Sequence record: ON529851.1
DNA length: 64,000 nt
Direction: 5' to 3' (one strand)
The translations under genes and the position numbers were made by a program. Positions within the stretch are counted from its first letter, which is position 1; the number at the start of each line of letters is the position of its first letter. The notes below the pieces were generated by a model, which saw only the letters and a program-made list of their open reading frames with translations, was not told the origin of the DNA and did no database searches. This document shows, piece after piece, positions 2,683 to 47,813 of this stretch.

Positions 2683-3159
2683 ATGAGCACTCTGAAAGAC
2701 CTTCAAGACCTCGCCCTCCAACAGCGCAAGGCCGCCGCCCAGGGCGACGGCGGCGAACACGCCGTCTTCCTCGCCATGATCCTGTCCGACGCCGCCGGCC
2801 TCGCCAAGGCGCAGCAGCGGCCGATGACGGACGACGACGCCGAGACCGCCATCCGGTCGACCGTCAAGGCGTTCGAAAAGACCCTGGCCGGCGACGAGGC
2901 CAAGGGATTGAAGCCGGTCGAACCCGACAGCGACTACGCCCGCAAGCTGATCGCCCAGCGTGACGTGATCGCCGCCCTGGTGCCGGCGCCGCTGGAAGGG
3001 CACCTGCTCGCCATGGCGATCCGCGACGCCGCCCAGGCGACCGAGAGCGAGATCAGCCCCAAGGGCATGGGCAAGATCATGGGCTGGCTGAACGCGCAGT
3101 ACCCCGGTCGGGTTGACGGCGCAAAGGTCAAGGCGGTCCTGGCCTCTGGTGTGGCCTAA
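2683..3159 (+). CDS. GatB/YqeY domain protein
   Basis: C-terminal KGMGKIMGWLNAQYPGRVDG matches the YqeY pattern; helical 158 aa. Confidence 0.8.
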   Translation: MSTLKDLQDLALQQRKAAAQGDGGEHAVFLAMILSDAAGLAKAQQRPMTDDDAETAIRSTVKAFEKTLAGDEAKGLKPVEPDSDYARKLIAQRDVIAALVPAPLEGHLLAMAIRDAAQATESEISPKGMGKIMGWLNAQYPGRVDGAKVKAVLASGVA

Positions 3160-22433: not shown

Positions 22434-23672
22434 GTGAGCACCTTTGCTGTTCCGATCCTCGCGATCGACGACGTCTACGATCACCCCAACGCTGATCGAC
22501 TCTCCATCATCCGTATTCGCGGCTACGAAGCCGTCGCCGGCAAGGCCGAGGACGGCTCGCACCGCTTCGCCAAGGGCGAACGCATCATCTACGTGCCCGA
22601 GGGCGCGGTGGTGCCGGACCAGCACCTGAAGGAGCGCGGCTACTGGAACGAGGCCAAGGGCGTCGGGCTGCTGGCGGGCACAAAGGGCAACCGCGTCAAG
22701 GCCATCACCCTGCGCGGCGTGCTGAGCCAAGGCCTGGTCTGGAAGACCGAACCCCTCACGGGGGCGAAGGTCAAGGATCGCGTGACCGGAGACATCGTGA
22801 CCCAGGTGAACCCTGAGAAACCCGCTCTGGCGATCGCCACGGCTGAAGACGGCACGCAGACGGCGGTGATGGTCGATTTCGGCGACGACGTCGCCGACTT
22901 CTTCGGCATCACCAAGTACGATCCGCCCATCCCGCCGGGCCTGGACGGCGACGTCTTCGGTCTGTTCGAGGCGATGTTCAACTACGACATCGAGAACGCC
23001 AAGGCCTTCCCGAACCTGTTCACCGAGGACGACATCGTCACGGTGACGGAGAAGCTGCACGGCACCTTCTGCCGGATGACCTACATGCCCGGCATCGAAC
23101 CGCGCGAGGACCTGTTCGGCGACGGCCGCGTGGCGATCACCTCCAAGGGCCTGGGCGCCGACGGCCTGGTGTTCAAGAACACCGCCTTCAACCGCCAGAA
23201 GAACGTCTACGTCCGTAACATGCTGCCGCTGGTGGACCACTTCGTCTCGGCCTGCAACCAGGACGCCAAGGGCCTGACGGTCCACCTGATGGGCGAGGTT
23301 TACGGCGCCGGCGTGCAGGACCTGAAGTACGGCCGTACCGAGGATCAGGGCTTCGCCGCCTTCGACGTCTGGATCGAGAAGTCTGGCTTCCTGGCCGAGA
23401 TCGAGAAGGAGTACGCCTGCATCGCCTTCGGGGTGGAGCGGGTGCCGGTGTTGTTCGAGGGCTTCTACGACAAGGGCCTGATCGAGGACTTCGCCAAGGG
23501 CGACACTACGATCGACGGCGCCGAGAACATCCGCGAGGGCGTCGTCGTGACCCTGACCGGCGAGCAGGACAAACGCCCTGACGGCAACGGCCTGGGCGGA
23601 ACCCTGCGCCCGATCTGCAAGGTCGTGTCGGAAGCCTACCTGACCCGCAAGGGCGGGACCGAACTGCAATAG
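22434..23672 (+). CDS. ATP-dependent RNA ligase (DRB0094/Rnl2-like, N-terminal OB-like domain)
   Basis: TEKLHGT (KxHG), GEVYG, FAAFDV, REGVVV, KVVSEAYL; N-terminal HPNADRL. Confidence 0.9.
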   Translation: MSTFAVPILAIDDVYDHPNADRLSIIRIRGYEAVAGKAEDGSHRFAKGERIIYVPEGAVVPDQHLKERGYWNEAKGVGLLAGTKGNRVKAITLRGVLSQGLVWKTEPLTGAKVKDRVTGDIVTQVNPEKPALAIATAEDGTQTAVMVDFGDDVADFFGITKYDPPIPPGLDGDVFGLFEAMFNYDIENAKAFPNLFTEDDIVTVTEKLHGTFCRMTYMPGIEPREDLFGDGRVAITSKGLGADGLVFKNTAFNRQKNVYVRNMLPLVDHFVSACNQDAKGLTVHLMGEVYGAGVQDLKYGRTEDQGFAAFDVWIEKSGFLAEIEKEYACIAFGVERVPVLFEGFYDKGLIEDFAKGDTTIDGAENIREGVVVTLTGEQDKRPDGNGLGGTLRPICKVVSEAYLTRKGGTELQ

Positions 23673-26844: not shown

Positions 26845-26931
26845 TGGAGGTGCGACCTGGACTCGAACCAGGATGAGGGTTTCCCCTACGGCTTATGAGG
26901 CCGCTGCCTATTCCAGCCGCGCCACCGCACC
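26845..26931 (-). tRNA. tRNA with CAU anticodon (Met or Ile2), long variable arm, U73
   Basis: acceptor GGTGCGG/TCGCACC-T-CCA; anticodon arm GCGGC-CTCATAA-GCCGT; V-arm AGGG-GAAA-CCCT; T arm CCTGG-TTCGAGT-CCAGG. Confidence 0.9.
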
Positions 26932-26942
26932 AAAAAGAAGTC

Positions 26943-27021
26943 CAGGCGTGCTCCCGTTACACTAAACCGGCGAGGGTCATGACCCTCGGGCGCCGGCTGC
27001 GGGGTTGAACCGCTCTGCCTG
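26943..27021 (-). ncRNA. circularly permuted tRNA mimic (YrlA-like module)
   Basis: order CAGGC, T arm GCGG-TTCAACC-CCGC, AGCCGGCG, palindromic hairpin GAGGGTCATGACCCTC, CGCCGGTT, TA, D arm GTGT-AACGGGA-GCAC, GCCTG. Confidence 0.75.
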
Positions 27022-27161
27022 TGTTTCCGCCGCTGCGCCATGCGAGCGCTGGCCGCTAAGCCAACGCCTGAGGGCTCGAACCCCGGCGACGAAGATTCGG
27101 ACCAGCCCGTCGGCCGGTCCACGAACGCCGCTGCGCCGAGGGAGGCGCCGAGGCGATCGAA

Positions 27162-27239
27162 TGGGAGCGGGGACACGATTCGAACGTGCGATCTCTTGGT
27201 TATGAGCCAAGAATGTTGACCGGGCTACACTACCCCGCG
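27162..27239 (-). tRNA. tRNA-Met(CAU), initiator-like
   Basis: CGCGGGG/CCCCGCT (C1xU72 mismatch), CTTGG-CTCATAA-CCAAG, GCACG-TTCGAAT-CGTGT, encoded CCA. Confidence 0.9.
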
Positions 27240-27629: not shown

Positions 27630-27971
27630 AAAGTGGGGAACTTTCTGTTCCAAGGCCCGGCAAGCCGGGGTTCCCCATACCCGTGGTCGCCCTTAGGCGG
27701 CCAGGAGGACTCGTTCGCCAGCGGCGAAGTTGTCGTTGTGTGCTTCGACAGTTGTCAAAGTTGGATCGTGAGCAGCCCGAAGACCACCATGCAGACCCTA
27801 GCACTCGCCATTCAATCCCGTCACCAACGTCAATCGATACTGTTCGGCCCCTCAAACCGCGCCCGTCTCCCATTATAGGAGGGGGATTGGTGGAGCCGAC
27901 GGGATTCGCACCCGTGTCTTGCCCGTCTGTTTCGTTCTCTCTGCTTCGGTCCGGAGACCTCCGCGCGACGA
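27630..27971 (-). ncRNA. ssrA: two-piece (circularly permuted) tmRNA, alphaproteobacterial type
   Basis: acceptor piece ends GACACGGGTGCGAATCCCGTCGGCTCCACCA (CCA 27888-27890); 36-nt spacer; coding piece starts GGGGCCG at 27851 (G3:U70, A73); tag frame 27743-27693 AHNDNFAAGERVLLAA*. Confidence 0.93.
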
Positions 27972-28026: not shown

Positions 28027-28113
28027 TGGAGGGACGGGTGAGAATCGAACTCACGCCAGGCTTTCGCCAGGAGGATTTGCAGTCCCCCGCCTTACCACTC
28101 AGTCCACCGTCCC
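28027..28113 (-). tRNA. tRNA-Cys(GCA) with long variable arm
   Basis: GGGACGG/CCGTCCC-T-CCA (U73); GGGGA-CTGCAAA-TCCTC; ~16-nt extra arm CTGGCGAAAGCCTGG; GTGAG-TTCGATT-CTCAC. Confidence 0.9.
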
Positions 28114-30354: not shown

Positions 30355-31740
30355 TCAGCCGACGACGTTTCCGTCCGAGAAGTCCATCGCTTCGACTTCC
30401 CGGATATAGCGCAGGACGCTCTCCGAGAAGCCGTCGATGTGGACCCACCCGTTGCCGTACCCGACACCATTCTGGTGGCTGGCGACGTTGATCATATAGG
30501 CCTTGTCGGCCTTGGGCGCCGGCAGTCGTCCGCCGCCCATGCCACTGCTCAGGGCGCCGTTCGCCTGTTCGTCAGTGATGACGATCAGTCGGTCGCAGGC
30601 GAACTGGCGGTTCACCACGTCCACGGCCTGGGCCAGGGCGGTGCCGCTGTGCGGCTGCGAACGGATCACCGCCTCGACCCCCGCCATGCCCTTGCGGGCC
30701 GGCACTTCCACGAGGCCGTTGGAGAAGGTCACGACGCGCACGTCGCCCGGCAGGATCGACGCCAGCGTCGCCGCCGCGTCCATCCGGGTCAGGTCCGACT
30801 TTCCGGACAGCTTGTTCCGCATGGAATAGGAGACGTCGACCATGACCACGGTCGATCCCGTGAAGGGTTCGGCCTGGTTGATCGAGGCCACCAGGGCGTC
30901 GTCCAGCGCCCGCTCGAACGAGGGCGCATAGCGCGCCGCCGCCGTGAAGCGGAAGGGCAGGACGCGATCCGCGCCCTTGCGCGCCCGGATCGCGGCGTTG
31001 ACCAGATCGCGATCGACGCCGGCCTGCTCCATGTTGCGCAGGTTGCGCAGCAGGGCGAGGTAGCCCAGCTTGCCGTCGGTCAGCAGACGCGTGAACGTCG
31101 CCTTCTTGTCCGCGCCGCCCGACAGGGCGACTTCCCAGGTGTCGGGCGCCGCCAGTTCGTTGTCGACCAGCTTCTTGTAGAGGGTCTCGCGGTCATCGTT
31201 CGCCGGCTTGGCGTGCGCCAGGAACAGGACGTCGCGCAGACGCACCGACTTGGCCCGATCGTATTTGGCGATCTGGTAGGCGTCGAAGTTGCCGAAGGCC
31301 ATCGACAGGCCCTTCTTCACCTGGGCCGACAACGGCGCCTTCTTGCCGTTCGAGCGCAGCGGGTTCAGCGCCCAGTAGAGGGCCAGGAACTCGCTCAGTT
31401 CGTCAGCGCGCTGAATGACGCGCGCGATGGTGAGCGACACCAGGGCCGAACCTGAGCCGCGCTGGGCCAGCACGACGAGCAGCAGAAGGGGAACGTGACG
31501 CAGCTTGGCGTCCTCGCGGGCCTCGACGGCGATCTGGGCGAGGGTCTCGACCGGAACCTCCTTGGCGAGGCTCTGGATACGGTCGGCGATCGACACGCCG
31601 CTCTCGTAGAAATTGTCTTCCCAGAGCAGGCAGGACATGACCGACCGGCGCAGGGCCTGCGTCTTGGTCATCCGATCGGCCGGCGCGCCTTCATGAGTTC
31701 GCGCGGTGGTCGCTTTGGGCTTTGCGTTGATCGACGCCAT
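30355..31740 (-). CDS. rsr: Ro60/Rsr-like TROVE + vWA RNA-binding protein
   Basis: THEGAPA, LRRSVMSCLLWEDNFYESG, KYDR..VRLRDVLFLAH, TWEVALS, LLRNLRNM, VLPFRF; vWA DVSYSM, GT, ITDEQ; AGGAGG RBS. Confidence 0.93.
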   Translation of the reverse strand: MASINAKPKATTARTHEGAPADRMTKTQALRRSVMSCLLWEDNFYESGVSIADRIQSLAKEVPVETLAQIAVEAREDAKLRHVPLLLLVVLAQRGSGSALVSLTIARVIQRADELSEFLALYWALNPLRSNGKKAPLSAQVKKGLSMAFGNFDAYQIAKYDRAKSVRLRDVLFLAHAKPANDDRETLYKKLVDNELAAPDTWEVALSGGADKKATFTRLLTDGKLGYLALLRNLRNMEQAGVDRDLVNAAIRARKGADRVLPFRFTAAARYAPSFERALDDALVASINQAEPFTGSTVVMVDVSYSMRNKLSGKSDLTRMDAAATLASILPGDVRVVTFSNGLVEVPARKGMAGVEAVIRSQPHSGTALAQAVDVVNRQFACDRLIVITDEQANGALSSGMGGGRLPAPKADKAYMINVASHQNGVGYGNGWVHIDGFSESVLRYIREVEAMDFSDGNVVG

Positions 31741-31782
31741 GATGGGTCCCCTCCTAAGTGTCTGTCGGCAGGATGACCTTGA

Positions 31783-31937
31783 GGTTGGGGAGGAAAAGTC
31801 GAAAACCCTTTCATACCGGTGCGTCTACCGTTTCCGCCACCCGCGCATTGTGGCGCGCGAGCCAGGACTTGAACCTGGAAGCCCTTGACGGGCGCCGGTT
31901 CCAGACGAAGTATGGGCTCTCTGCGCCATCCCCGACC
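31783..31937 (-). ncRNA. Y-RNA-like element D: permuted class II (Leu-like) tRNA mimic with internal GCCA
   Basis: ACCGG, V-arm GCCC-GTCAA-GGGC, T arm CCAGG-TTCAAGT-CCTGG, CTCGCGC-GCCA-CAAT-GCGCGGG, TG, D arm GCG-GAAACGGTAGA-CGC, CCGGT; outer stem GGTCGGGGA/TCCCCAACC. Confidence 0.85.
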
Positions 31938-31957
31938 TCGCGGTCAGTGAACTCTCC

Positions 31958-32095
31958 GGCGCTCTGGTAGGAAGGCGGGGGAACATACGCAGCCGGATAG
32001 CGGGATCGAACCGCGAGACCGGGGGTTTGAATCCCGGCTTATCAACCAGCGATGTAACCGACCGCTTTCACCACCCGCCCACCAACCAGGGCGCC
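31958..32095 (-). ncRNA. Y-RNA-like element C: non-permuted degenerate tRNA-like core (UCA loop) in a long closing stem
   Basis: outer GGCGC-CTGGT/ACCAG-GCGCC and GGCGGG/CCCGCC; GGTGGTGAAAG motif; T arm GCGG-TTCGATC-CCGC; loop ATTCAAA. Confidence 0.7.
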
Positions 32096-32108
32096 GGAAA
32101 AGCAGAAA

Positions 32109-32259
32109 CATGAAGGCGGTGGGGGAATAAGCGACCCCACTCTTTTTTAGGCGTGCTACCGTTACACCAAACGCCGCTAGGCGACGTTGCGGAATCGAAC
32201 CGCTCATCCCGCTCCACATGCGATGAAAGTGACGTCTGTCGCCACCCACCGCCTTCATG
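32109..32259 (-). ncRNA. Y-RNA-like element B: permuted tRNA mimic
   Basis: 15-bp perfect outer stem CATGAAGGCGGTGGG; T arm GCGG-TTCGATT-CCGC; AACGTCGC-CTA-GCGGCGTT; D arm GTGT-AACGGTA-GCAC. Confidence 0.85.
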
Positions 32260-32269
32260 CTGTTGGTCC

Positions 32270-32445
32270 AGAAGCGTATGGTGGATCGACAGGGGAACCG
32301 GCGGAAAGGCGCCGTTTGGACTATCGTTCTAACCAACTGAACTACCGCCGCGCCCGAGGGTGCGCCGGGTGGGACTCGAACCCACGACCTACAGTGTGCG
32401 AAGAATGCCTCTCCTTCACCACCTGTCGACCCGCCATACGCTTCT
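32270..32445 (-). ncRNA. Y-RNA-like element A: permuted tRNA mimic with bulged helix
   Basis: 12-bp outer stem AGAAGCGTATGG; GTCGACAGG/CCTGTCGAT; GGTGG[T]GAAGG/CCTTTCCGCC; ACTGT-AGGTC-T arm GTGGG-TTCGAGT-CCCAC; D arm GTTC-AGTTGGTTA-GAAC; ATAGT. Confidence 0.88.
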
Positions 32446-32464
32446 CGACCCTGTCCGCGACAGT

Positions 32465-32580
32465 CCCGAGGACTGACCCCGCAGAGAACCGGAGTTCCCT
32501 TGCGGGGTCAAGTCGTCCGGGAATAGGCGGAACCGAGAGCGGGGCCAAGGCCCCAACGTACCAAAAACGAAGAACTCGGT
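32465..32580 (-). ncRNA. 5' leader hairpins of the Y RNA array
   Basis: TGACCCCGCA/TGCGGGGTCA 10-bp stem; ACCGAG/CTCGGT enclosing GGGGCC/GGCCCC. Confidence 0.4.
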
Positions 32581-32625
32581 CCCTGTCGCCACGGACAATG
32601 ACTGTGTGCCCGATCCCGTTCATTG

Positions 32626-32643
32626 TGTCAACAACGACGACAG
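32626..32643 (-). promoter_or_regulatory. -35 element with CGT box upstream of Y RNA array
   Basis: CTGTCGTCGTTG-TTGACA; -10 not clear. Confidence 0.5.
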
Positions 32644-32663
32644 AAAAAGTTGGGATTTGCGGC

Positions 32664-32696
32664 AAAAAGAAACCCCCGGATCGCTCCGGGGGTTTC
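32664..32696 (-). terminator. terminator after repressor gene
   Basis: GAAACCCCCGGA/TCCGGGGGTTTC stem then TTTTT. Confidence 0.85.
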
Positions 32697-32728
32697 CACG
32701 ACGTCTGACGTCGGCGGGGGTTCCAGGG

Positions 32729-33445
32729 TCAGACGCCGATCTTGCCCACCACCTTGCCCAGCAGGGTGATGCTCTTGGCGGGGACGTCGCGGTGTCCGCG
32801 ACGGTCCTGATCGAAGATGCGGTAGGGGCCGTTGGCGCTGGGGCGGGTGAGGTGGTCGACGCGGACCTCGCCGTCCAGGGCGTAGACGAAGGTGGCGCCC
32901 GTGGGGGTGGGGGTCGCCTCGCGCTGCACGAAGGCCATCTCGCCCGGTTGCAGGTTCTCGGCGAAATCGTCGATCCGGATCAGGGCGAGGGATTCGGTCG
33001 GCACGTCGAACTGGGTTTGCAGCCAGTCGGCGAACATGGGCCAGGCGCGGGCGGCGGTGAAGCCCTTGCGCGGGCCGGCGAACTCGACTTCTTGCAGGGT
33101 GACGAGGTCTTCGATCCCGTCGGCCAGCCATTGCGGCGCGGTTTGCAGCGCCTCGGCGAGGATGTCAGCCTTCTGGGTGCCGAACGCCAGCCACTCCGGC
33201 GAACATTGCAGGGCCTCGGCCAGGGTGACGATCTTCTCGATGTCCGGCAGAACGTCCCCGGTCTCGTACATGCAGTAGGCGGAGCGGGACAGGACCTTCC
33301 ACTCGGCCTGGCGGCGGTTGTAGAATCTGATCTTGGCCGCAACCTCGGCCTGGGACATGTCCAGTTCCATGCGGCGCGACGTCATGCGCTCCTGCATGGT
33401 GGTGGGGTTATCGATCATTCCCTTGAGCGACCCCTTGCGATGCAT
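32729..33445 (-). CDS. XRE-family HTH / S24-like repressor
   Basis: RRMELDMSQAEVA...YETG..P..EKIVTLAEALQCSPEWLAFG; C-terminal S24-like beta domain; AAAGGA RBS at 33445. Confidence 0.8.
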   Translation of the reverse strand: MHRKGSLKGMIDNPTTMQERMTSRRMELDMSQAEVAAKIRFYNRRQAEWKVLSRSAYCMYETGDVLPDIEKIVTLAEALQCSPEWLAFGTQKADILAEALQTAPQWLADGIEDLVTLQEVEFAGPRKGFTAARAWPMFADWLQTQFDVPTESLALIRIDDFAENLQPGEMAFVQREATPTPTGATFVYALDGEVRVDHLTRPSANGPYRIFDQDRRGHRDVPAKSITLLGKVVGKIGV

Positions 33446-33844
33446 GGGTCCTTTCTCCTTGAGAACGGCAGACTTAATAGGGCGGGTCGCTTCCAGCGTG
33501 CTCGGCATCTCTTATAGTCCTCTTCTTAGGCGACCGGTCCCCCGGCCTGCGGCGCCATGTCAACAGCGGTAACCGCGACTGACAGGAATGGTTGCAGAGG
33601 CTTGTATCGATTGTCTGGCAACGAATCAACGCCAGACAACGAAAAAACCCCGGCGACACGCGATATAGGCGCTGTCACCGGGGCTTCAACCATCAGTCTG
33701 AGGCGATCTTGTGTCCGAGCCGATTCCCTTAAAAGCCCGTCAGATCACAGATATTGGTGTTTTTCTTGACGCCTACCGCCAGCCATCCTCACAGGAATGG
33801 GGTGCGACACTCTGTCGCACCTTTATCCACGCAACTCTGCGCGA

Positions 33845-47198: not shown

Positions 47199-47813
47199 TC
47201 ATGCCGCCGCCTCGGCCTTGGCGGCGCGTTCGGCCGCCAGGTGGTCCTGGATGAACCAGAAGAGGTCGCGGCAGTCGATGACGTCGCCGATCGCCTGGTG
47301 CGCCGAGGTCGGTTCGCGGTGCAGCAGCTTGCGCACCGCGTCTTCCAGCTTGGGCCAGGCGTAGCCCTGGTAGCCGTTCTTGTTGGGGAACTTGCAGATC
47401 GGGATGCCGGTCTGCATGGTGCAGAACTGATTCTTACCCTGGAAGACGTCGAGCGACGAATTGCCCGACAACAGCCGAGCGGCGTTGTTGATGATGTTGA
47501 CGTCGAACTCGATGTTGTGCGCCACCACCACGTCCGCGACCGCGACCATGTCGCAGAACACGTCCAGAACCGGGCCTTCCGTCAGACCGATCGCCCGAGA
47601 CACCGCCGTGGTCGTGCCGTGCACATTGGACGAAGCGAGCGGGATCGGCTGGTCGCGATAGACGATCATGTCCATACGCATGAGTTCGGCGCGCGTCTCG
47701 CTGTCCTGGAGGATGGCGGCGATCTGGACGATGCGCGGCTGGTCCTGATGACCGCACGCCATGCGCTTGTTCCACAGACCGGTGGTTTCGGTGTCGAAGA
47801 AGAGCAGGTTCAC
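47199..47813 (-). CDS. DEDDh 3'-5' exonuclease (DnaQ-like)
   Basis: FDTETTG, AHNIEFD, AHQAIGD. Confidence 0.9.
   Translation of the reverse strand: MNLLFFDTETTGLWNKRMACGHQDQPRIVQIAAILQDSETRAELMRMDMIVYRDQPIPLASSNVHGTTTAVSRAIGLTEGPVLDVFCDMVAVADVVVAHNIEFDVNIINNAARLLSGNSSLDVFQGKNQFCTMQTGIPICKFPNKNGYQGYAWPKLEDAVRKLLHREPTSAHQAIGDVIDCRDLFWFIQDHLAAERAAKAEAAA

Follow-up and report, generated by a model that had tools for sequence, protein, structure and literature searches.

Record ON529851.1 is Brevundimonas phage vB_BpoS-Marchewka (hereafter Marchewka), a 348-kb jumbo phage of the Dolichocephalovirinae. The window analysed here, 100% identical to the phage, is a stretch of 64,000 nucleotides of this record, with window base 1 corresponding to record base 248001, and all positions below are those of the window. 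The subject is element D, an RNA element on the minus strand within a 990-nt unannotated gap between a helix-turn-helix gene (32729-33508) and a gene for a 461-aa protein (30355-31740), an orthologue of Ro60/Rsr. Five Y-like RNAs stand in tandem before Ro60; D comes last, and the other four occupy 31958-32596 on the minus strand. The Ro60 gene follows directly downstream on the same strand, with the end of D about 35 nt ahead of its ribosome-binding site. A scan of 31600-32900 for promoters and terminators found nothing; D, its siblings and the Ro60 mRNA are probably carried on one transcript. The Ro60/Rsr protein is the presumed protein partner of D, and three tRNA genes and an unannotated two-piece transfer-messenger RNA (tmRNA) lie nearby on the same strand.

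The upper part of D is a permuted tRNA-like domain embedded in a long interrupted stem (Table 1). Chen et al. (2014; PMC4201824) defined YrlA by the presence of a tRNA-like domain in a Y RNA and reported it from 254 bacteria and 22 phages. The order of domains in D is that of YrlA: V region, T arm, acceptor stem-loop and D arm, closed by an anticodon-like stem. The minimum free energy (MFE) fold of the whole of D has an energy of -79.4 kcal/mol (z -3.2). The acceptor stem comprises 7 pairs, including one G-U, beside the 5-bp T stem, and it starts with G1-C72 and has G3-C70 rather than G3-U70. The T loop UUCAAGU fits the YrlA T-loop UUCRA, and the nucleotides for the tRNA tertiary contacts are all present (U8, A14, G18G19, A15/U48, G53-C61 and U54-U55-C56-A58). 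The acceptor loop looks like the 3' end of a pre-tRNA (G73-CCA) that runs through a 4-nt leader with a final U into the 5' end of a pre-tRNA. Below the CCGG stem, an internal loop of 14 nt (5' side) and 6 nt (3' side) leads to an 8-bp stem and then to further stems out to 31945 and 31775. On the native sequence ARAGORN makes no call at D, which is to be expected of a permuted order. An earlier sequence-only reading of 31815-31899 had listed a permuted class II domain with a 7-bp acceptor, G-CCA and a CAAT linker, and all of these features are present on the minus strand. Its description as a complete permuted class II tRNA holds as far as a circularly permuted, Leu-shaped domain with encoded discriminator and CCA is concerned, but the domain is not complete, as it has no anticodon loop.

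Table 1. Features of element D and related elements in the window (tRNA numbering in brackets)
Feature	Position	Strand	Remarks
Whole Y RNA D, ~147-171 nt	31775..31945	minus	Basal stems, Ro60-type motif, internal loop, permuted tRNA-like domain
Ro60-binding-type motif UGGCGCAG, putative	31921..31928	minus	5' strand of basal stem; compare YrlA GNCGAAN0-1G (PMC4201824)
UACUUCG motif	31906..31912	minus	5' side of internal loop under tRNA-like domain; invariant in D-orthologue alignment
Anticodon-stem 3' strand ACCGG (39-43)	31895..31899	minus	Pairs with 31815-31819; CCGG core invariant in all orthologues
Long variable arm CGCCCGUCAAGGGCUU, 16 nt	31879..31894	minus	Stem GCCC/GGGC (4 bp), loop GUCAA; class II feature
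T arm CCAGG-UUCAAGU-CCUGG	31862..31878	minus	5-bp stem; 100% paired; 3/5 pairs doubly changed between lineages; matched by model R1
Acceptor 3' strand CUCGCGC (66-72)	31855..31861	minus	7 pairs with 31840-31846
Discriminator G73 (31854) and CCA (31853-31851)	31851..31854	minus	In acceptor loop; same N-CCA register in CcrColossus/CcrPW and in 15 distinct modules elsewhere
Linker CAAU, 4 nt	31847..31850	minus	U(-1) before predicted RNase P site 31847/31846
Acceptor 5' strand GCGCGGG (1-7)	31840..31846	minus	
U8 G9 and Leu-type D arm GCGG-AAACGGUAGA-CGC	31821..31839	minus	D arm 31837-31821
Anticodon-stem 5' strand CCGGU (27-31; 31819-31815), AUGAAA	31809..31819	minus	Preceded by A26; AUGAAA is the 3' side of the internal loop
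Y-like RNA Y0	~32505-32596	minus	Ro-type motif GUGGCGACAG, without tRNA domain; highly conserved even in CcrColossus
Y-like RNA A	32301-32413	minus	Permuted tRNA-like domain; loop A-CCC-UCGGGC
Y-like RNA B	~32108-32262	minus	Permuted tRNA-like domain; closed short loop
Y-like RNA C	~31958-32098	minus	tRNA-like domain in normal order
Sixth, B-like permuted element	26941-27024	minus	R1 with filters off: 18.5 bits, E 8e-6
Two-piece (circularly permuted) tmRNA	27693-27950	minus	Rfam RF04321, 57.2 bits; internal GGCUCC-A-CCA; unannotated in GenBank
Ro60/Rsr orthologue, 461 aa	30355..31740	minus	Pfam TROVE 2.6e-12, VWA_2 2.8e-6, vWA_Ro60 7.7e-4
ATP-dependent RNA ligase, N-terminal OB domain	22434-23672	plus	PF09414 and PF21189

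D-type modules are found in Marchewka and Bambus, in Domovoi, Papperlapapp and Kabachok (about 90% identical), in CcrColossus and CcrPW (about 70%) and in the IMG/VR contigs L265 and L277; the module is kept in at least four phage lineages, in the same place before Ro60. Covariation was assessed on an alignment of seven sequences with a manually assigned structure, which represent six distinct orthologues from three phage lineages. In this alignment 95.6% of the structure is paired and 11 pairs are changed on both sides, while sliding the partners by 1-3 columns as a control reduces the paired fraction to 35-47%. The variable-arm helix is paired in all orthologues, with one-sided variation at two pairs. 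The acceptor hairpin is CUCGCGC-G-CCA-CAAU-GCGCGGG in Marchewka, CUUGAUC-C-CCA-ACAG-GAUCAUG in CcrColossus and CCUGCAU-CUCUG-GUGCAGG in the Domovoi group, the last with a closed CUCUG loop that has no CCA, and the acceptor stem of L265 is closed by GCGA. Three acceptor-stem sequences in three lineages, all of them compensated, indicate on comparative grounds that the acceptor stem of D is real. The arrangement N-CCA-N4 is kept in the Marchewka and Colossus lineages, which are the most distant from one another, with different stems, discriminators and linkers.

As no Rfam family matches D, a separate covariance model was built. Relatives of the Ro60 protein number more than 500 in viral and more than 500 in genome collections, and the loci of the best 80 viral and the best 80 genomic relatives were fetched; 190 Ro60 loci from both kinds of collection were analysed. 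Scanning with a pattern of T arm, 7 nt, loop, 7 nt, U8 and D arm returned modules in most of these loci. The model, R1, was seeded with 45 such Ro60-adjacent modules from lineages outside the phage subfamily of Marchewka. R1 matches D with 32.0 bits (E 1.3e-9 in 91 kb), and in the window it also matches sibling A (60.2 bits), sibling B (33.4 bits) and, weakly, the permuted tmRNA (13.6-15.4 bits). Across the 190 loci R1 yields about 280 matches, nearly all on the Ro60 strand and just upstream of the gene, and D is therefore grouped with the Ro60-adjacent permuted tRNA-like modules. Furthermore, every module of the array carries on its 5' side a motif G-G-C/U-G-N-A-(N)-G near the published GNCGAAN0-1G, those of the siblings being GGCGACAG, GGUGAAGG and GGUGAAAG, and the UACUUCG motif also precedes the T arm of many unrelated modules and is common to class I modules. 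D shares with YrlA (RF02553) a same-strand position immediately upstream of Ro60/Rsr, a basal stem with a putative Ro60 motif and the succession of T arm, closed acceptor and D arm. Judged by sequence, element D is a YrlA-class Y RNA and the presumed non-coding partner of the phage Ro60 (Rsr), and binding of D to Ro60 is very probable.

D differs from published and Rfam YrlA RNAs in its long variable arm and Leu-type D arm, as YrlA has a short V region; in addition, it is one of five tandem Y-like RNAs and is missed by the Rfam model. Chen et al. (2014; PMC4201824) give one YrlA per genome, the best, and their main text has no mention of a CCA encoded in the genome or of a long variable arm. 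The class II features point to a particular parent. Among 232 tRNAs called by ARAGORN, six of the seven with D arms closest to that of D are tRNA-Leu. A blastn search with the half containing the variable arm and T arm gave a single match outside the phage lineage, an annotated tRNA-Leu. A scan of metagenome and viral sequences with a pattern of D arm and anticodon stem returned 240 loci, 180 of which are ordinary tRNA genes, mostly genuine tRNA-Leu, and its eight permuted matches comprise four D-type modules from two lineages and four tandem tRNAs. This D-arm pattern was used to find class II modules, since automatic inference of variable-arm length, based on a 5-bp anticodon stem, gave too much noise to classify modules. 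Global alignment of re-permuted D to the 232 tRNAs was uninformative because the stems dominate the score. D has the Leu-type long variable arm and D arm, with a discriminator G73 and not A73. Together these comparisons indicate that the tRNA-like domain of D is derived from tRNA-Leu.

In the contigs L265 (2270-2560) and L277, which are 231 and 435 kb long, a D-type class II module lies directly after a tRNA-Leu(GAG) gene, and the module and the neighbouring tRNA-Leu(GAG) have an identical variable arm, CGCCCGAAAGGGCTT. No Ro60 gene was present within the fetched locus of either contig. The identity of the arms suggests that this module was recently derived from, or gene-converted with, a phage tRNA-Leu gene. 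The phage contigs L218 and L302 contain class II tRNA genes in tandem, separated by spacers of 8-10 nt and nearly identical in their acceptor stems.

The internal N-CCA of D was examined against the other Ro60-adjacent modules. For this count the window was excluded, identical modules were collapsed, and modules that overlap ARAGORN tRNAs or lie on the wrong strand were dropped; the ARAGORN filter also flags some obvious YrlA modules, so that the counts are conservative. With CCA at loop offset 1, which corresponds to tRNA positions 74-76, there are 15 distinct modules with 14 different stems. Among loops of at least 8 nt, CCA stands at offset 1 in 11 of 33, compared with a composition-based expectation of 0.025 per loop (binomial p 2.8e-10), and at offsets 0, 2, 3 and 4 it occurs 1, 0, 0 and 2 times, respectively. 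For loops of at least 5 nt the figure is 15 of 101 (p 3.6e-8). The discriminator of the 15 modules is A in seven, G in five, C in two and U in one, a purine in 12 of 15. U(-1), the leader base preferred by bacterial RNase P, is present in 9 of the 15 and in 18 of the 86 other loops (Fisher p 0.003). In one B-type module shared by CcrColossus and contig L042, compensated changes distinguish the stems and ACCA is kept, while the 30-nt linkers resemble each other only as much as shuffled sequence does (17 identical positions versus 17.2 +/- 1.5). In the window, the tmRNA and all three tRNA genes encode CCA as well. These counts indicate that the internal NCCA of Ro60-adjacent modules is non-random.

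Three NCCA modules, L009:2147, L043:2105 and L140:2316, have a common linker start UCU(A/U) with quite different acceptor stems, their loops being G-CCA-UCUAU, A-CCA-UCUAC and G-CCA-UCUUAU, respectively. The NCCA loops of these three modules may be under a constraint that extends beyond the CCA.

A precedent for opening such an acceptor is found in Mycobacterium smegmatis, whose YrlA, with a 7-bp acceptor stem as in D, undergoes cleavage at the RNase P site in vivo and is also cleaved by M1 RNA in vitro (PMC4201824). Its 5' half is CCA-ended after nibbling of the end and both halves remain bound to Rsr, whereas the Salmonella and Deinococcus RNAs, which have shorter stems, are not cut (PMC4201824). 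The CA of the M. smegmatis end is added after trimming; in D the whole N73-CCA is genome-encoded. Chen et al. considered that the CCA end might protect the RNA from 3' exonucleases (PMC4201824). The crystal structure of a YrlA shows the L-shape of tRNA, and the RNA was described as a tRNA that is circularly permuted and has its acceptor closed, with discussion of possible further processing (10.1101/312249). The suggestion in the sequence-only reading that D blurs the line between Y RNA and permuted tRNA accordingly stands in the literature for YrlA and is not new. A paper from 2025 lists CcrColossus among the phages with YrlA-like RNAs and describes an in vitro complex of a phage Ro60, a Y RNA and the host polynucleotide phosphorylase (PNPase) (PMC12135203).

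On the preferred reading, the top of D would fold as a tRNA-Leu-like L while its base binds Ro60, and host RNase P would then cut at 31847/31846. The CAAU linker would be trimmed by 3' exonucleases back to A76 (31851). The product would be a CCA-ended Y RNA in two pieces, which remain joined through the acceptor, anticodon and basal stems and are bound to Ro60, like the YrlA of M. smegmatis. The resulting ribonucleoprotein would gate Ro60 and tether it to a host exoribonuclease (e.g. PNPase) or to a tRNA-binding factor during infection, and the CCA end may protect D from 3' exonucleases or be read by a tRNA-binding partner. Opening by RNase P and 3' trimming, as proposed in the sequence-only reading, is plausible in the light of the mycobacterial case (PMC4201824), and the enrichment of NCCA and U(-1) together with G1-C72 would favour it. 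The chances that D is opened by RNase P appear about even. The reading as a whole, namely that D is a YrlA-class Y RNA with a permuted, tRNA-Leu-derived top, opened by RNase P, CCA-ended and bound to Ro60, is considered probable.

Several observations weigh against this reading, some of them against membership in the family. The Rfam scan, at gathering thresholds and at E values up to 10, gave no match at D to RF02553 (YrlA) or any other family, and RF02553 scores sibling A with 32.6 bits compared with a gathering score of 69; the silence of RF02553 at D is likely due to the long variable arm and the divergent stem. The motif GGCGCAG (31921-31927) is one base off the published GNCGAAN0-1G. Other observations concern the CCA. 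In the MFE fold G73 forms a wobble pair with U(-1), which gives an 8-bp helix with a 6-nt loop and may hinder or shift cleavage by RNase P. The N-CCA is lost in Domovoi, Papperlapapp and Kabachok and in L265/L277, all of which have closed loops of 5-6 nt, and the module can therefore be kept without a CCA end. For the D lineage taken by itself, three retained bases at about 70% identity are not significant. In addition, the NCCA enrichment could come in part from the repeated birth of modules out of tandem tRNA genes that encode CCA.

In an alternative reading D stays an intact Y RNA, in which the acceptor is a closed hairpin as in Salmonella YrlA and GCCA is a relic of the parent tRNA-Leu gene or of a tandem pair, without a present role. 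This alternative, possible if somewhat doubtful, is consistent with the closed, CCA-less loops of the Domovoi group and L265/L277 and with the tetraloop-closed acceptors of most YrlA-like modules. It also agrees with the recent derivation from tRNA genes indicated by the L218/L302 tandem tRNAs and by the L265 variable arm identical to that of the neighbouring tRNA-Leu, with the CCA encoded by the phage's own tRNA genes, and with an 8-nt loop that can shrink to 6 nt via the G73-U(-1) pair. However, a relic does not readily account for a CCA in exact register over 14 stem backgrounds, which moreover survives beside the randomised Colossus/L042 linker, nor for a U(-1) enrichment limited to the NCCA class. 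Furthermore, the small closed acceptor loop of M. smegmatis YrlA is cut by RNase P (PMC4201824).

If D is opened, the two-piece RNA could in addition be aminoacylated, with a role in translation or as a decoy of charged tRNA, like two-piece tmRNA. The probability of this is low. D has a full tRNA upper half, the tertiary-pair nucleotides, a 7-bp acceptor and an encoded CCA. Leucyl-tRNA synthetase (LeuRS) and seryl-tRNA synthetase do not read the anticodon, and class II tRNAs are charged without its recognition. The host clade matures a permuted tmRNA with an internal encoded CCA and the phage carries one, and aminoacylation of M. smegmatis YrlA was raised as possible by Chen et al. (PMC4201824). 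On the other hand, the CCA is absent in close relatives, and the discriminator is variable across the NCCA modules. LeuRS requires A73, an identity element of E. coli tRNA-Leu, while the discriminator is G in D and C in Colossus. Finally, G3-C70 in place of G3-U70 gives no Ala identity of the tmRNA type. A tmRNA-like alanine identity of D was rejected in view of G3-C70; D also lacks a tag open reading frame and a resume codon.

That D is a decayed, functionless tandem tRNA-Leu pair, consisting of a 3' half and the next 5' half with an accidental YrlA-like score, is very improbable. Chen et al. warn of 'dimeric tRNA' false positives (PMC4201824), R1 gives weak matches where a tRNA T arm precedes another tRNA (27118-27201), and tandem tRNAs likewise produce an NCCA followed by a spacer. 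However, D is neither preceded by a D arm or anticodon arm nor followed by a T arm, its spacer measures just 4 nt, it carries the Ro60-type motif, and it is kept before Ro60 in the four or more lineages mentioned above. Its halves are tied together by the conserved anticodon stem and the covarying basal stems, on which ground a decayed pair was excluded.

The weakest alternative is a true permuted tRNA gene, in which a cut at 37/38, joining of the ends by the phage RNA ligase and opening of the acceptor would give a decoding tRNA with anticodon GAA. It goes back to the sequence-only reading, which took A-U-GAA-A as U33, GAA and a purine 37 and suggested that the ligase could join the ends at 37/38 into a GAA-anticodon tRNA. 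Joined in silico, D is indeed called by ARAGORN as an 88-nt class II cloverleaf, tRNA-Phe(gaa), and an ATP-dependent RNA ligase is encoded in the window; but the cut point is chosen freely so as to give a 7-nt loop, U33 and a purine 37 arise by chance about once in 8 choices, and the ligase gene lies 9 kb away on the other strand. The supposed half-loops are the two sides of the 14/6-nt internal loop in the Ro60-type stem, with the Y RNA motif UACUUCG and then the 8-bp stem, rather than a bulge-helix-bulge, and no suitable splicing endonuclease is known from bacteria (10.1101/312249). Since, moreover, the joined loop AUGAAAA of Marchewka loses its register through deletion of one base in the 90%-identical Domovoi group and reads AAG in CcrColossus, and a Leu-type body that decoded Phe codons would lead to misincorporation, this barely credible alternative was rejected for want of a bulge-helix-bulge, for half-loops that lie in a conserved internal loop and for a register lost in relatives.

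Returning to the preferred reading, in which D is a Y RNA opened by RNase P, several known systems offer points of comparison. The two-piece tmRNA of Alphaproteobacteria (RF04321) resembles D in the succession of T arm, acceptor 3' strand, N-CCA, intervening segment and acceptor 5' strand. Here, too, the intervening piece is lost while the flanking two remain paired, as is proposed for D, although the segment is about 30 nt long in the tmRNA and 4 nt in D. In contrast to tmRNA, D lacks a tag frame, pseudoknots and G3-U70, and has a D arm, a variable arm and the association with Ro60. The permuted tRNA genes of Cyanidioschyzon merolae and of other algae and archaea likewise have the 3' half first and the acceptor closed by an intervening sequence, which is opened by RNase P and tRNase Z (PMC3978253). 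These genes have a bulge-helix-bulge, circularisation by splicing endonuclease and ligase, a full anticodon loop and a decoding function, none of which applies to D, and they mostly rely on CCA addition, whereas D encodes the CCA (PMC3978253). Yrn1 of Deinococcus radiodurans and Yrl1/Yrl2 of Thermus phage phiLo are Y RNAs bound to Ro60, some of them phage-encoded upstream of Ro60, that can bridge Ro60 and host PNPase (PMC12135203). The T and D arms of Yrn1 are in the other orientation, like those of sibling C, and no tRNA-like domain is described for the phiLo Yrls, which in this resemble Y0.

The siblings of D are of several kinds (Table 1). In module C (31991-32063), a D arm, an anticodon-like arm with the loop AUUCAAA and a T arm follow one another, and the 'acceptor' stem runs on into the Y stem. 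Its orientation is that of Deinococcus Yrn1, unlike YrlA, and it scores 21.9 bits with the Rfam tRNA-Sec model. The sixth, B-like element at 26941-27024 lies between two tRNA-Met genes, 3.3 kb downstream of the 3' end of the Ro60 gene and 4.8 kb from D, with an 18-nt hairpin in its acceptor loop and the motif AUGGCGCAG just upstream. The five or six Y-like RNAs and the two-piece tmRNA are absent from the GenBank annotation of this phage family, and some array modules of relatives are mis-annotated as tRNA-Ser (Kikimora, Gurke) or tRNA-Gln (CcrColossus). The tRNA-Cys(GCA) at 28027-28113 and the tRNA-Met(CAT) at 26845-26931, both on the minus strand, are 87 nt long with variable arms of 12-13 nt, which is unusual for these amino acids in bacteria and phages. 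Of the RNA-metabolism genes elsewhere in the window, besides that of the ligase, an RNase T/DEDD-family exonuclease (PF00929), labelled a DNA repair exonuclease, is encoded at 47199-47813 on the minus strand and a YqeY/GatB-like protein at 2683-3159 on the plus strand.

Family membership, as a YrlA-type Y RNA beside a phage Ro60, and a published precedent for opening are thus the known part of the description of D. New here are a class II body derived from tRNA-Leu, a statistically recurrent subclass in which N73-CCA is encoded in full and has RNase P-type flanks, and arrays of five to six members. A more far-reaching proposal, unlikely at present, is that phages and Alphaproteobacteria have a distinct subclass of Ro60-associated Y RNA that is encoded as a pre-opened tRNA, with N73-CCA in the genome and an RNase P site within the acceptor loop. 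Its members would give rise to two-piece, CCA-ended mimics and serve as substrates of enzymes and factors acting on tRNA, such as those of CCA repair and possibly EF-Tu or a synthetase. Each RNA of the array would in that case imitate a different tRNA, D being the counterpart of tRNA-Leu, and together they would recruit Ro60 and an exonuclease to host factors that act on specific tRNAs during infection (e.g. anticodon nucleases) or act as decoys for such factors.

The class II module and the tandem tRNA-Leu genes offer a concrete route from tRNA genes to permuted tRNA mimics. Marchewka and Domovoi form a natural experiment, in which one module at 90% identity is found with and without the CCA loop. 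If there is a subclass built for opening by RNase P and for a genuine CCA end, the case of M. smegmatis would be a selected design and not a curiosity, and such a subclass, if true, would point to partners that read the 3' ends of tRNAs.

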